Positions 42,401 to 51,400 of a stretch of 64,000 nt of DNA are shown here, piece by piece. The first letter of the stretch is position 1, and every line of letters begins with the position of its first letter. The position numbers and the translations under genes were made by a program. A model generated the notes under the pieces. It was not told the DNA's origin. It ran no database searches and worked only from the letters and a program-made list of their open reading frames with translations. Origin of the DNA: Schmidtea polychroa (taxonomy: Eukaryota). Location of the stretch: positions 21,576,001-21,640,000 of the forward strand of contig CM097887.1 in assembly GCA_044892525.1 (NCBI GenBank), given 5' to 3'.

Positions 42401-45400
42401 ACATCAATTTCAGACGAAAAATAACCAAAAATAATGAAAAAGCGCAAAATTTGAAATGGGGATTGTACTTCATCATGGGCATTTGTACTTCATCATCACT
42501 TTCCGCGGTTGTGGATTTACCTGGTTTAAATGAATTGTCCAACGTTGCTTGTCTTGCCTTGCTTTCTTCTTCTTTTTTCAGTTCTTTATAACAGCTAATG
42601 GTTGAGTTAATTTCTCGAGAAACTTTAAAGTCAGGATCATTTTGAAGAAGGATGTTTAATCATTGTTCGAAATAAAAAAGCAGTAAAATACATATGAGAC
42701 CGTGCGTGAGCTTCGTATTCCAGTGACCTCTTAACGGCACTGGCCGGTAATAAAACATCGGGGCCGTATATCGAAAAAGATTCATATTTAATGAAGGCCG
42801 TGAAAGAGAAAAGCTGTATAAAGAACGGCCGTATAGAGAGGGATGGGTGTAGTTATATAACAAAAATGACATACGTTCCTTTTGCATTAAACAAATTTAA
42901 TTTATATTTAAAAGATTTAATTTTGGAAGACTGTTGAGTTGAATGTGGTTATTTGTAAATATTTGTTTACATATCTAGATGGTAAATAAATGTTTCTTCG
43001 TTGAAATGTTTAAAGTAATATATTTAGTTACTTTCTACTAAAACTTTGGCGTTTATACTTGGTTCAGCTACAAATTCTTTATTTGTAAAATGATATCTTT
43101 CCAGTTGAATATTAGAATATATCAGAATCACCTAGAAAATATTCAAACTCAGATTCCGTATCAAGATCATGATCGTCTACAATTTCAGAATAATTCATAT
43201 TTGTAAGCCCTTCTCCCATTGTCACTGCCTATGAAATCAAATAATTCCCACAATTAATGACAAAAGTCAAATAATATAACGATGAATGAAGAGATACGTA
43301 TCGCATATCAAACTGTCCAGATGAAAATTATTGTTCTTCTAGTCTCTGAAAAATGTCAAAGCGTCCTATAGATATTTGCATCCATATAGCAGAGGATTTC
43401 CAATCCTAAACAGATTATATGTGAAAAATAAAAATATCTATGCCTTGCAATATCTCTGGAAAGCGTCTCATTTAATTTTTATTTATCCATTGCGCTATCG
43501 TATATTTTATTCGACTTGTTTCTAGTAAATTGAATAAATCCCAGAATTAAATATTTCATTATCCATTGCATTTTTCAACTCTATTGAGGGATAACATTTT
43601 TCAATTAAAATATGGAGCTGGTTGATAAAATGTAAATGCCTAACAGGTTTGGGTTTTGATTTATGTTCTTTACCGACTATTTCTCATATGATTTCTAATT
43701 ATGATCTTTATTATTATGGTCGCATAAACCCTTAATTCTTTATCAATTGCTAGGTGTCATATATAGAAATATATTGTGAAAGAGTTAGAGATTTATTAAA
43801 TCCAAAAAATAAAACTAATCTCCGAGTGCGAGAACATCCATTATTGGGACCTTATGTTGAAGATCTTTCCAAATCTATTGTTAGATCTTTTCAAGACATA
43901 AATGAGCTAATAGATGCAGGCAACAAATCAAGGTAATTTATTTATATCCGATACTGATGGGAATTTAGAGACATATTATTAGAACTGTGGCGGCAACCAA
44001 TATGAATGAGACGAGCAGTAGATCTCATGCTGTCTTCACTATTATTCTCAGTCAGAGAATTTTAGACGAAGATGGAGAAATGACAGGAGAAAAGGTNNNN
44101 NNNNNNNNNNNNNNNNNNNNNNNNNNNNNNNNNNNNNNNNNNNNNNNNNNNNNNNNNNNNNNNNNNNNNNNNNNNNNNNNNNNNNNNNNNNNNNNNNNNN
44201 NNNNNNNNNNNNNNNNNNNNNNNNNNNNNNNNNNNNNNNNNNNNNNNNNNNNNNNNNNNNNNNNNNNNNNNNNNNNNNNNNNNNNNNNNNNNNNNNNNNN
44301 NNNNNNNNNNNNNNNNNNNNNNNNNNNNNNNNNNNNNNNNNNNNNNNNNNNNNNNNNNNNNNNNNNNNNNNNNNNNNNNNNNNNNNNNNNNNNNNNNNNN
44401 NNNNNNNNNNNNNNNNTATAAATTAAAAAAATTATTTGGAGACTTTGAAATGTGGTGACTTCAAATTATATTTTTCATAAATTTCATTGTTTAAATTTTA
44501 GTTCTCTTTCTTTATTATTAAATTTTATGTAAATATTTAATTCATTTTGGGTACAATTTATTCACCGAAATTTCAAATGCGGATAGACAAATGATATAAT
44601 AATATATAAATATATAACAAAATAATAAATCGGTATGTAAAATGAAATATTTTGATAGGTAATTTGACTAATAATAATAATAAATAAATAGATATTTTAT
44701 TCATATAATATATAGATAAAATTTAATTTTCTATAAAATGGATTGATTAGAAATTATGTATCTTGTTTTGTGTGTAATACACACATGTTTTTACGATAAA
44801 TTTGTATTTATTATACGTTAACGTAATTTCCTTGGATATTTATTCATATATTATATAGATAAAATTTAATTTTCTATAAAATGGATTGATCTAGAGTTTA
44901 AAATGTTGTATTATTTTATTACTTTGTTGCAATATTTTTATTATTTTAGTTACAATATTCTTTTTAATTTGTTGTCCGTCTTCGAAATAATGTATTGATT
45001 TGTCTTAATTACCATTATTATTTTATTACTTTGTTGCAATATTTTTATTATTTTAGTTACAATTTGATAAATATTTTACAACTTTGTTGAAATTTTCTGA
45101 AATATGTTACTACTTTGTTGTAATATTTCTAATCTTGTTACAATTTGCTTAAATATTTTACAACTGTTGAAAATTTATCTGAAATATGTTATTACTTTGT
45201 TAGAATTTTATGAAAACGTTATTACTGTTTTGCAATTTGATGAAAAATGATATTACTTTGTGGGTTCATCACATTATTTTTATTAAATTATTATGAAAAT
45301 GTTAAATAACTCAACTTTAGCGTCAAAATGTGTTTTAAAATAAATTAATTTTTTCCTACCCTTCCTTGATTTTGATTGGTTAGAATTTGTTCCTATGAAC

Positions 45401-48400: not shown

Positions 48401-51400
48401 TCTTACTTTTGTAAATAAGCATTACGTAAAAACCGATGAAAACACCGAGTTACTTTATATAGATATTAATAATCTTTATGGTTGGGCTTTAAGTCAATCA
48501 TTACCTTGTGGTGAATTTAGTTGGGTTCTTGATGGATTTGATTTAATAATGGATGAATGTAGGAATTTAAATCTTGAATCTTTGTCTTATGGATACACTC
48601 TTGAAGTTGATCTTGTAATTCCTTCTGAACTTCATGATAAGTTGGATGATTTCCCTGTAGCTGCTGAAAAAATGAAACCTGCTGGGTCTAAGGTTGAAAA
48701 ATTATTATTAACTCATCTTCCAAAATCTAATTATGTGATTCATTGGAGATTATTAAAATTATATTTGGAACTTGGTGTTAAAGTAACACGTGTAAATAGG
48801 GGTGTAAGATTTAAGCAATCTCCAATTTTTAAAAAATATATAGATACCAATACAGAATTAAGGTCAAAAAGCATAAATAATTTAGATAAAAATTATTATA
48901 AATTGTTAAATAACAGTTTATACGGCAAAACAGTTGAAAATTTAAAGAGAAGAATGAATCTTCGTCTTTGTACTACTGCCGGTAAATTAGTTAAATATTC
49001 TTCAAAGCCGACTTTTAAAAAATCTATTAAAATAGACGATAATTTAATTGCAGCATTATTGAATTCAGATTCTATATGTTTAGATAGACCAAGTTACATT
49101 GGTCAATCTGTACTTGATCTATCTAAACTTAGAATGTATGAATTACAATATAAGGATTTAGAATCATTTCGCAATGAGTTTAATTGTAAAATTAATATCG
49201 TTGCTGGTGATACAGACTCTTTTTTCCTCGAAGTCATTAACTGTAAACTTGAGGTTCTTTTACCTGCAATGATTCGAGATAATTTATTAGATACTTCCAA
49301 TTACAATAGTTGTCATTCCTTATATAGTAAGAACCTTGATTCTGTCATTGGAAAGTTCAAAGACGAGAATAAAGGTCTTAAATATAAGGAATGGGTTTTT
49401 CTCAGACCTAAATGTTATAGCTTGTTGGGTGATGAGGAAACAAAAAAGGCTAAAGGTGTAACACTGAAAGGTAGTGACATAAAACATCAGTCATACCTGG
49501 ATTGTTATAACACTAACCAGATTTTTTCGGTTCCTCAGACTAAAATAACAAGCAAAAATCATCAAATTTTTACAATTAAAAATACTAAAATAGCACTAAC
49601 TAATAAAGATGACAAAAGGGTTTGGGTGGGGAAAAATACTAGTCTTGCATATGGGCATGTAAGATTAAGTCATTTAAATATTGGAGAAAATGTTGGAGAC
49701 ATTGTTGGAGAAGAATTTGATGAAAATGTTGGAGAAATTGTTGGAGAAGAATTTGATGAAAATGTTGGAGAAGATTTTGGAGAAGATGATATTAATGACA
49801 TTATTTTATCTGATGAAGACTAATTTTATTAAATAAAAGTTTATATCTTTACATTTGTTCTTTTTATTTGTTTGGTAAATTTTTATGTTTGTTATGTGTC
49901 TAGTTATTTTTTTTGTTTAGTTAATGTTTATATGTTTTGTTATGTGTCTAGTTATTTTTATCTGTTGTATAGTATTTGGTTGAAATAATAATATTATTAT
50001 TATTATTATTATTATTATTATTATTATTATTATTATTATTATTATTATTATTATTATTATTATTATTATTATTAATTTGGACCTTAATTAACTTTAATTC
50101 AAAAATTTACCATGATTTTAGTGTAAACCCTTTTTTATTGAAAATCATAGGACCAAGGTGACCCTCATTATAGTCTAAATAATTCCATGCTTTTTAGTGT
50201 AGACCACTTTTTTATTGAAAATCCCTGGATCAATCGAGACCTCTCACTATAGTCTAAAAAAAAAAATTTTGGACTAAAAATCCCTGAAAGCAAAAATAAA
50301 ATGAGTTGGGAGCAATTGCGTAATCAAAAAATGTCTACGGAAAAAATTATGCAATCAAAGGTTGCAACATTTTTTACCCCCCCCCCCCCATATTGTTGCC
50401 GCGGGCCACTAACTCCCTACTGATGTTAAACTAACAAAGAAAAATATAATTAAATGAAAATTTCTTTATTTTCTTCATTCCTGTACAAAAATCACAATCC
50501 CACCTTACCTTACCCCACCCCGTTATTCAATACCCATCCAAATATACCGTACCGAGAGAATGAAATAATAAAAAGAGACCAAAAAGTGAAAATGAAAAAA
50601 AATGAAAAAAAATAATAAAAAAGTCTAAAAAAGTGAAATTTCTTGTTATTTTTTCGGATAAAATATTTTGCCATTTTTTTTGCCATTTTCTCACAGAACG
50701 AATTAAAATTTCATTTGGTCTTCTATGTTTTTAACTTGAATAATTGAATTTACCCATAATTTAGAGCTTATATATCCGGACATACATACACACATACTTT
50801 CATATTAGATTGGTAATATTCTAAATGACAAATATACAATAGAAAATAATGATTTATTTACCTGAATTGTAAATACACTCATACCTCGCTTTACGGCCTA
50901 GATACGTTCCAGGAAAGTTGGCCGCAAAGCGAAACGCCGCATAACGAATCAAATACATTTTGATACAATTCCATATAAATTTCACACTTATTTTGGCCGT
51001 ATAACGAAACATTTTAGGCCGTAAATCGAAAAAGTGCCGTAATTAAAGTAGGCCGTTATAGCGAAAAGCCGTATAAAGAGCAGCCGTATAGCGAGGTATG
51101 AGTGCATTATAGTTGTCTGCAAACTTTAGCCTGGCTAAGAAACACATTTAATAAAAAAGAACTGCATAAATATGAATATCTTCTCGCCTCTTTCTTCCAA
51201 ATCTATAATTATATCATCAAAATCGATCAACTTCACTTTTTTCTTTCTATCGAAGAAATCTCTAGAAAAGAGAATCTTTCTGTACAGATTGTAGATCGGA
51301 GAACTATATTAGCAATAAACTGCGTTCGGCTGAATGAAGGGCTACTGACGTGTGCCATTTCACAAATTTAGATAAGCTTCTGAAAACTTGTTTTCAGCGA

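Follow-up and report, generated by a model that had tools for sequence, protein, structure and literature searches.

An intact Polinton-type DNA polymerase gene in a kinesin-3 intron of Schmidtea polychroa, probably the remnant of a truncated Maverick/adintovirus-like element

Complete Polintons/Mavericks measure ~13-20 kb and are bounded by terminal inverted repeats with a short target-site duplication. In a complete element, the family B DNA polymerase (PolB) would prime replication of the linear genome at its terminal repeats and copy it, and an integrase, a packaging ATPase, a maturation protease, and capsid proteins would provide for integration and particle formation. The protein-primed PolB (pPolB) of polintons has been described as a series of terminal protein (TP)-like, vOTU, exonuclease, and palm domains (PMC11161782). 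According to the same paper, the TP-like D1 domain of polinton PolBs matches little-finger regions of Y-family polymerases, a homing-endonuclease-type insertion occurs in PolB, and some linear plasmids have primer and polymerase in one gene. Here, we analyze a PolB gene that lies within a stretch of 64,000 nucleotides of S. polychroa DNA (GCA_044892525.1, contig CM097887.1; hereafter, the window).

A sequence-only reading of the window had described this gene as a stop-free ORF of 1,269 codons, and our counts bore this out. The PolB frame contained 0 in-frame stops vs. 62-195 in the other five frames, and across 1,000 shuffles of its bases the stop count averaged 109 and never fell below 75. 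No open frame in the window is longer, the runner-up having 742 codons. Its GC content is 0.294 vs. 0.293 for the window, and that of related genes ranges from 0.29 to 0.40. The reading had also placed PolB inside an intron of a kinesin gene and on the strand of that gene, which was confirmed by Pfam Kinesin matches in the exons on both sides and by the GT and AG read at the intron ends (Table 1). This GT..AG intron (44095-53458) separates two consecutive motor-domain exons on the same strand as PolB, and the host gene is a kinesin-3 (unc-104/KIF1A-like). PolB and the downstream kinesin exon share one uninterrupted 9.5-kb stretch, which ties PolB physically to the host gene. The window as a whole is rich in transposons, with a Gypsy-type and a Penelope-like element, and holds eight N runs of 128-343 nt.

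Table 1. Features of the PolB locus, of its protein product, and of related loci (nucleotide positions in the window; aa, positions in the PolB protein)
Feature	Position	Strand	Description
Upstream kinesin exon	43987..44094	+	Pfam Kinesin positions 190-220; GT at 44095-44096
N run	44097..44416		320 N starting right after donor GT
Upstream region	44417..46013		Non-coding, 10-20% GC, nested tandem repeats, two identical 48-nt copies
PolB gene (intact pPolB)	46014..49823	+	1269 codons plus stop, ATG start
N-terminal region	aa 1-~120		Variable; in-frame 24-bp repeat
Putative TP-like D1 domain and Cys/His domain at vOTU position	aa ~120-400		Invariant C272, H376
Cys2-His-Cys finger	C404, C407, H420, C424		Between Cys/His domain and exonuclease
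3'-5' exonuclease	module aa ~543-578		Endonuclease VII/HNH-like zinc module inserted
Polymerase palm, fingers, thumb	C-terminal of exonuclease		From alignment and model
Acidic C-terminal tail			In-frame 36-bp repeat
3' flank	49824..50075		AT-rich; AATAAA, 48-bp tandem repeat, (TAT)27 microsatellite
Downstream kinesin exon	53459..53602 (3' end approximate)	+	Pfam Kinesin positions 223-272; AG at 53457-53458
Related locus L001			rve+chromo integrase, Pox_A32 ATPase, Bcl-2, TBP beside PolB
Related loci L002, L003, L026			rve integrase/Pox_A32 ATPase module as in L001
Related loci L004, L006			Peptidase_C48 gene directly upstream of PolB
Related loci L005, L006, L027			Convergent genes just downstream of PolB: 156-170 aa, 407-408 aa, 117-141 aa

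The limits of the insertion are soft on both sides. On the left, the N run hides the limit, and a terminus is possible there; on the right, the AATAAA, which lies 9 nt past the stop, is followed by the 48-bp tandem repeat and then by (TAT)27, and the boundary of element-derived sequence cannot be fixed within this AT-rich flank. The maximum element size for this copy is ~6 kb. The repeat-rich region upstream of the gene may be the terminal or promoter region of the element, although it matches no related locus. Splice-like signals 5' of the PolB ATG were rejected because the position of this ATG matches the start of related proteins in the alignment. The small ORFs 5' and 3' of PolB yielded nothing coding, no ORF of ≥90 aa occurs elsewhere in the intron, and a search of the whole window against Rfam returned no match.

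Sequence profiles said little about the protein itself. Pfam PF03175 (DNA_pol_B_2) did not match it even at E up to 10, and searches of Pfam, NCBIfam, and PHROGs gave only weak endonuclease VII matches. However, PF03175 matched 4 of 11 aligned relatives (best E 1.9e-32), which points to limited sensitivity of the model rather than absence of the domain. A sequence search of the PDB found nothing with the single protein and reached phi29 at E 0.24 with a profile, and it took structure to connect the protein with pPolB. Its assignment to DNA_pol_B_2 is based on the PF03175 matches of the relatives together with structure.

The AlphaFold model of the window PolB (pLDDT 90.1) had phi29 polymerase as its best structural match in the PDB (E 2e-19, TM 0.7 on target). 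Chains of phi29 polymerase occupied ranks 1-9 (E 2e-19 to 4e-16; TM 0.65-0.71 on target), with pox, herpes, and archaeal PolBs ranking below them (E 1e-9 or weaker). The overall fold, as modeled, is thus closest to a protein-primed polymerase and not to RNA/DNA-primed PolBs. Among viral models, the top matches were bidna-like, Adintovirus sp., Drosophila-associated adintovirus 3, and MELD-virus PolBs (E 1e-65 to 1e-49). When the N-terminal domain was modeled (pLDDT 91.6), its best matches were little-finger regions of Y-family polymerases. At the position expected for vOTU, C272 and H376 were invariant in 70 sequences, and no OTU structure appeared among the top 50 Foldseek matches.

The domain order in Table 1 was read from the alignment and the AlphaFold model, and the catalytic motifs from two alignments, in which the window protein was combined with 10 and with 69 relatives. 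In both, the exonuclease residues D460/E462 (Exo I), N592/D597 (Exo II), and Y728/D732 (Exo III) were invariant, as were the polymerase motifs Pol A (D817..G823), Pol B (K963..K972), and Pol C (D1066-T-D-S1069). This upholds the earlier claim that all exonuclease and polymerase catalytic motifs are kept. At 151 highly conserved columns, the window protein deviated at 2, which equals the family median and fits little decay since insertion. We conclude that it is a full-length protein-primed family B polymerase of the Polinton/Maverick type; the sequence-only reading had named the same type, and both the relatives and the phi29-like model agree with it.

The window PolB has >1,700 relatives, many of them annotated with PF03175 and PF02945. 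The nearest database relative is 57-63% identical, with the best value of 63% over the polymerase part, and the exact window protein has no entry in the searched contig index. Alignment with the relatives is full-length and colinear, the start codon region included. All close relatives with enough flank lie in ordinary virus-like elements of 12-16 kb, where PolB is accompanied by genes for an integrase, an A32-type ATPase, and an Ulp1-type protease and by a conserved gene of 407-409 aa. These neighbors begin ~0.3-0.9 kb from PolB; in particular, the convergent gene that is a candidate for the capsid module begins 230-520 bp past the PolB stop, and it is absent at the window locus. The 90% cluster of P0003 is found repeatedly, on contigs of 14-16.3 kb, and the contigs with IMG/VR relatives measure 6.5-23 kb, mostly 12-23 kb. 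In a quick neighbor-joining tree, the window protein fell among P0006, P0007, P0010, and P0011, followed by P0001, P0002, P0003, and P0005; P0001, P0002, P0003, and P0011 have partner genes beside PolB.

No such genes accompany PolB in the window. Using all PolB-neighbor proteins of seven loci (L001-L006, L027), tblastn against the whole window matched only PolB. None of the integrases of L001, L002, and L003 had a match in the window, where the sole rve match belongs to a Gypsy element (28413-29171), and the same held for the ATPase, the C48 protease, and the conserved 110-410-aa partner proteins of the seven loci. Within the intron, even E up to 10 gave only noise. The absence of integrase, ATPase, protease, and capsid genes that had been read from the ORFs therefore stands for the assembled sequence. 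An inverted and direct repeat search of the intron revealed no terminal inverted repeats, the flanks being linked by low-complexity matches only. When both PolB flanks were compared by blastn with the window and 27 related loci, matches outside PolB were confined to microsatellites, and no second copy of either flank was found. The intron offers the element at most 9.4 kb of room, and no partner gene occurs in the 1.6 kb before PolB or in the 3.6 kb after it.

A PolB without partners has a precedent among the related loci. At L025, no partner genes occur within 10 kb of PolB, which sits amid piggyBac-like and RT elements, is broken into at least two ORFs, and has a second PolB fragment nearby. 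This lone PolB indicates that a solitary PolB is an ordinary stage of decay.

Taken together, the locus is probably a Maverick/Polinton (adintovirus-like) remnant that inserted recently into the kinesin-3 intron and was then truncated. A virus-like element would have integrated into the intron, and the part that survives would be its replication gene, perhaps with an adjoining terminal non-coding region. Truncation could have come about through later deletions or through integration of an already partial genome. Without partners or recognizable terminal repeats, the window copy would be unable to function as an element of the complete type. We propose that a young insertion or truncation, and not a new lifestyle, accounts for the ORF having stayed open. 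Several observations sit uneasily with a remnant. Going by the gene layouts of relatives, both flanks must have been lost without the faintest trace of a partner, yet a 3.8-kb ORF was left untouched; the gene content of the lineage is bracketed from relatives that are at most 63% identical; and recency is read from the intactness of PolB alone. In addition, the agreement in GC content between the ORF and the window would also fit long residence, although the GC content of relatives spans 0.29-0.40.

The sequence-only reading had gone further and taken the lone PolB for either a minimal element of ~6 kb that replicates itself or a polymerase domesticated by the host. This was not supported: no terminal inverted repeats or other shared ends mark off such a unit, the sampled members of its clade lie beside partner genes and conserved structural-module genes, and the PolB of L025 is solitary too. 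The same reading had held that partner genes in sister copies would make this an ordinary deleted Maverick. Relatives from other sources do carry them, which comes close to that outcome, but these are not copies from the same genome.

Among the alternatives, an assembly artefact is unlikely. The N run would then be either an unsized gap that conceals more of the element or a wrong scaffold join; it does begin two bases past the exon, at the left edge of the region, and several relatives have genes upstream of PolB. However, the uninterrupted stretch to the kinesin exon shows that the gene is truly in the intron, and eight N runs of unequal length look like sized masks or gaps. At 320 nt, the run is too short for a partner gene, and the sequence on either side of PolB is empty over far longer distances than those at which the neighbors of relatives begin. 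Even with a large gap, the downstream module would still be missing.

We consider it quite improbable that a Maverick/adintovirus lineage has given rise here to a derivative with PolB alone that persists in this form, whether as a host-kept gene or as a stripped-down unit leaning on its own TP-PolB fusion and, for all other functions, on complete relatives. Persistence of this kind would explain why the ORF is untouched with its partners traceless on both sides.

Domestication proper, in which purifying selection maintains PolB for some host function while the remainder of the element has decayed, appears very unlikely. The 1,269-codon ORF is intact in DNA of 29% GC, where random frames have ~100 stops, and it shows no excess changes at conserved sites. 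PolB also lies on the sense strand with AATAAA just past its stop, and the absence of partner remnants would fit an old decay of everything else. Yet a young insertion predicts intactness and normal conservation equally, and the typical conservation of the window PolB fits recent insertion as well as selection. Moreover, the PolB start coincides with the one in viral relatives, the protein retains its putative priming domain in full and its endonuclease insert just as mobile relatives do, and a narrow literature search returned no description of a domesticated polinton PolB in animals.

Also very unlikely is a minimal PolB-only mobile or self-replicating element of ~6 kb, linear-plasmid-like, with its own ends and its own TP-PolB fusion: a TP-like priming domain would let one gene give both primer and polymerase, and the 1.6 kb of extremely AT-rich, repeat-rich sequence before the gene might represent a terminal region, but the flanks are joined by low-complexity inverted matches only and recur neither in the window nor at related loci, no complete PolB-only contig was found among the relatives, whose short PolB-only contigs end in or beside partner genes wherever flank exists, and a nuclear intron copy without integrase has no evident route of insertion.

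As a probable remnant, the locus enlarges the already large Maverick/adintovirus family by one divergent PolB, whose identity to known proteins is at most 63%, and it represents another case of a Maverick-like element inserted into an intron of an essential host gene. If data from the same genome or from other species showed PolB on its own to be under conservation or to have spread in several copies as one unit, this would be a first case in which an animal has kept a protein-primed polymerase by itself, or in which an element has shrunk to one. The related elements on 14-16.3 kb contigs that carry Bcl-2 and TBP homologues may serve virologists more than the intronic copy does.

Among the described systems comparable to the window copy are linear plasmids with a TP-PolB fusion, known from fungi and plants, and Bidnaviridae. 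These resemble the window PolB in uniting a priming domain, putative in the window protein, and a polymerase in one polypeptide, and PolB is the only hallmark gene that they share with it. They are extrachromosomal or encapsidated, with terminal inverted repeats and further genes, whereas the window copy is chromosomal and intronic and shows no terminal repeats. Solitary Maverick PolB remnants, represented by L025 and by old mammalian Maverick endogenous viral elements (PMC9683012), offer another parallel. The L025 PolB lies amid unrelated transposons, like that of the window, but it is split, whereas the window PolB is uninterrupted.

Measured against the pPolB architecture of PMC11161782, the N-terminal domain of the window protein gives the same little-finger matches. 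The region where vOTU is expected has the invariant Cys and His, yet the vOTU fold is not among the top 50 Foldseek matches. The window protein also has a Cys2-His-Cys finger, whereas the word “zinc” is absent from the text of that paper. Polintons and adintoviruses differ from the window copy in having partner genes, terminal inverted repeats, and a length of 13-20 kb; the window copy has no partner genes and no recognizable terminal inverted repeats, and it spans at most ~6 kb. Its PolB also differs from known Polinton/adintovirus PolBs in sequence, with no match above 63% identity in the searched collection. Still, it is with Polintons/Mavericks and the invertebrate adintoviruses (Preplasmiviricota; Drosophila-associated adintoviruses, PMC8363768) that the window PolB shares its type and its predicted order of domains, and the PolBs of adintoviruses, MELD viruses, and bidna-like viruses provide its best viral structural likeness.

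The 1269-codon frame that opens at an ATG and encodes the Maverick/Polinton-type PolB is free of stops and is the longest in the window, the next longest having 742 codons. Over the same 3.8 kb, the remaining five frames contain 62-195 stops, and shuffling the bases of the ORF (n=1000) gave a mean of 109 stops and a minimum of 75. Scans of the window protein against Pfam, NCBIfam and PHROGs yielded nothing beyond a weak endonuclease VII match (aa 543-578), and a sequence search of PDB gave no match. A large protein collection, by contrast, held >1,700 relatives, the best with 63% identity over aa 440-1200, and many PolB relatives carry precomputed PF03175 (DNA_pol_B_2) and PF02945 annotations. 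When 11 aligned family members were scanned singly, four matched PF03175 (best E 1.9e-32) and all matched the endonuclease VII model. The window protein aligns colinearly with its relatives from its opening residues through to the C-terminus. Across it and 69 relatives, the acidic pairs of all three exonuclease motifs and polymerase motifs A, B and C are invariant, confirming the sequence-only reading that every exonuclease and polymerase catalytic motif is present. Also invariant are a Cys/His pair (C272, H376), a Cys2-His-Cys finger (C404, C407, H420, C424) and, within the endonuclease-like insert, its Cys and His ligands. Two in-frame tandem repeats fall outside the relative-aligned regions: the N-terminal variable region has one of 24 bp x 3.8 (46228-46321), and the acidic C-terminal tail has one of 36 bp x 2.8 (49686-49786; 95% matches).

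The top PDB structural matches to an AlphaFold model of aa 101-1229 (pLDDT 90.1) were nine chains of phi29 DNA polymerase (E 2e-19 to 4e-16; TM 0.65-0.71 on target), with pox, herpes and archaeal PolBs ranking far behind. Among predicted viral structures, the matches were bidna-like 'densovirus' PolBs, Adintovirus sp., Drosophila-associated adintovirus 3 and MELD virus (E 7e-65 to 4e-49). When aa 121-440 were modelled on their own (pLDDT 91.6), Foldseek gave weak but consistent matches to Y-family polymerase little-finger regions, the same matches as reported for D1, the terminal-protein-like domain of polinton PolBs (PMC11161782). A vOTU fold is also described in polinton PolBs (PMC11161782); Foldseek recovered none with the aa 121-440 model, and a putative domain at the vOTU position is proposed from the invariant Cys/His pair only. 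Given the relatives, invariant motifs and structural matches, the gene is a complete polinton/adintovirus-type TP-PolB fusion, and its product is a fairly divergent, previously unrecorded member of the polinton-type pPolB family.

Features of the window around the PolB gene
Feature	Position (nt)	Strand	Details
Ty3/Gypsy-type LTR retroelement coding region	28413-32817	-	protease, RVT_1, RNase H, integrase zinc and core domains, zinc knuckle; four ORFs, so at least 3 interruptions
Penelope-like element ORF	35046-36674	-	reverse transcriptase and GIY-YIG endonuclease domain; contains N run 36321-36663
Candidate transposase fragment	40096-40389	+	98-codon open stretch in the preceding kinesin intron, by reading alone
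Further kinesin motor/neck exons	~38013-38309, 43754-43933, 63297-63530		
Kinesin motor exon	43987-44094	+	Pfam Kinesin profile positions 190-220
Kinesin intron	44095-53458		donor GT at 44095, acceptor AG at 53457-53458
N run, 320 nt	44097-44416		directly past the intron donor site
Upstream non-coding block	44417-46013		10-20% GC, nested tandem repeats throughout
PolB ORF	46014-49823	+	1269 codons
MITE-like unit, 237 bp	50872-51108		same intron; 26-nt inverted ends, 92% complementary
Kinesin motor exon	53459-~53600	+	Pfam Kinesin profile positions 223-272
Other N runs	4086-4213, 11904-12033, 36321-36663, 53916-54154, 58281-58435, 58785-58939, 60762-61013		

The two exons flanking PolB match consecutive positions of the Pfam Kinesin motor model. 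These matches and the GT/AG borders put the ORF in a kinesin intron and in the host gene's orientation, agreeing with what had been read from the sequence. The window's eight N runs vary from 128 to 343 nt; because their lengths differ and at least one lies within a transposon ORF, they suggest sized masks or gaps rather than a fixed placeholder. An assembly effect would bear on the left side only and is unlikely, as PolB and the next kinesin exon share one uninterrupted stretch of sequence and the downstream module is absent in any case. The upstream block, which includes two identical 48-nt copies (44909-44956 and 45016-45063) and a 52-nt pair (98% identical, 143 nt apart), could be either an element terminus or a local minisatellite. 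On the 3' side, an AATAAA 9 nt past the stop is followed by a 48-bp tandem repeat, a (TAT)27 microsatellite and then unrelated sequence.

We used every partner protein of seven fetched loci holding PolB relatives (L001-L006 and L027) as a tblastn query against the window, and against the intron at E up to 10. Nothing but PolB matched, upholding the earlier statement that no integrase, ATPase, protease or capsid gene accompanies it. Terminal repeats are missing as well: inverted repeats linking the two PolB flanks amounted to low-complexity matches, and the flanks had no further copy within the window and no match in any fetched related locus. The ~6-kb minimal self-replicating element first proposed is therefore not borne out.

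The relatives themselves sit among partner genes. The 16.3-kb contig L001 (PolB P0003) carries an rve+chromo integrase, a Pox_A32 ATPase, five conserved genes of 110-410 aa, and Bcl-2 and TBP homologues, and the same module is found in three integrated copies from one assembly, ERZ25039515 (L002, L003, L026). In L004 and L006, from the P0001 cluster that is nearest by identity, a Peptidase_C48 gene lies ~310 bp upstream of PolB and convergent genes of 74/158/407/117/343/369 aa lie downstream. L005 (P0002) has homologous downstream genes of 156-170, 407-408 and 117-141 aa, and L027 (P0011, nearest NJ clade) has the same genes plus a TBP homologue upstream. At 35% identity, L010 and L011, on megabase eukaryotic contigs, hold an A32-type ATPase and many other genes. 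The 19 members of the P0003 90% cluster repeatedly occur on contigs of 14-16.3 kb across different samples, as expected for a genome of ~16 kb, and relatives in IMG/VR come from contigs of 6.5-23 kb, mostly 12-23 kb.

Two further observations concern these loci. Homologues of two cellular proteins, Bcl-2 (PF00452) and TATA-binding protein (PF00352), occur in the related virus-like elements, at 12382-12759 and 12985-13431 in L001, 7583-8161 in L003, 15883-16317 in L026 and 2-328 in L027; the TBP gene is common to at least four loci. L003 also contains two head-to-head PolB genes, 3-2213 (-) and 2839-6315 (+), ~625 bp apart. Two elements inserted back to back, inverted duplication or misassembly could each account for this.

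The simplest account is that a Maverick/adintovirus-like element integrated in the ordinary way into a large, transposon-rich intron, leaving the polymerase gene alone, possibly with a terminal non-coding stretch. The copy may formerly have had partner genes or may have arrived as a fragment, and its intact ORF would reflect youth. It would no longer behave as an element because it lacks an integrase, a capsid module and recognisable ends. The weak point of this account is that both flanks are clean and the ORF untouched, the partner-rich context being known from relatives only.

The PolB copy shows no sign of relaxed constraint. A leave-one-out count of 55 sequences found the window protein at odds with the family at 2 of the 151 columns conserved at >=95% (median 2, range 0-9 for the remaining 54), and its terminal NJ branch is 0.31 vs a median of 0.23 (range 0.09-0.46). 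These values fit a young copy and a selected one equally. A PolB-only lineage, maintained by the host or by itself, is very unlikely. Domestication by the host, for which the intact ORF is the sole evidence, seems highly improbable. Least probable is a PolB-only replicon, to which just the intact ORF and built-in priming domain point.

The locus has no integrase, no morphogenetic genes and no terminal repeats, and does not match in size either; for this reason it is not a complete Polinton/Maverick, and is best described as a derivative of that class. A solitary PolB is a decay state already known. One relative, L025, is in the same condition: its PolB (9325-12460), broken into two or more ORFs, is flanked by a piggyBac-like transposase and RT elements, and partner genes are absent within 10 kb. 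An additional PolB fragment lies at 1-1065. Its assembly, ERZ25039515, holds both such solitary copies and complete elements.
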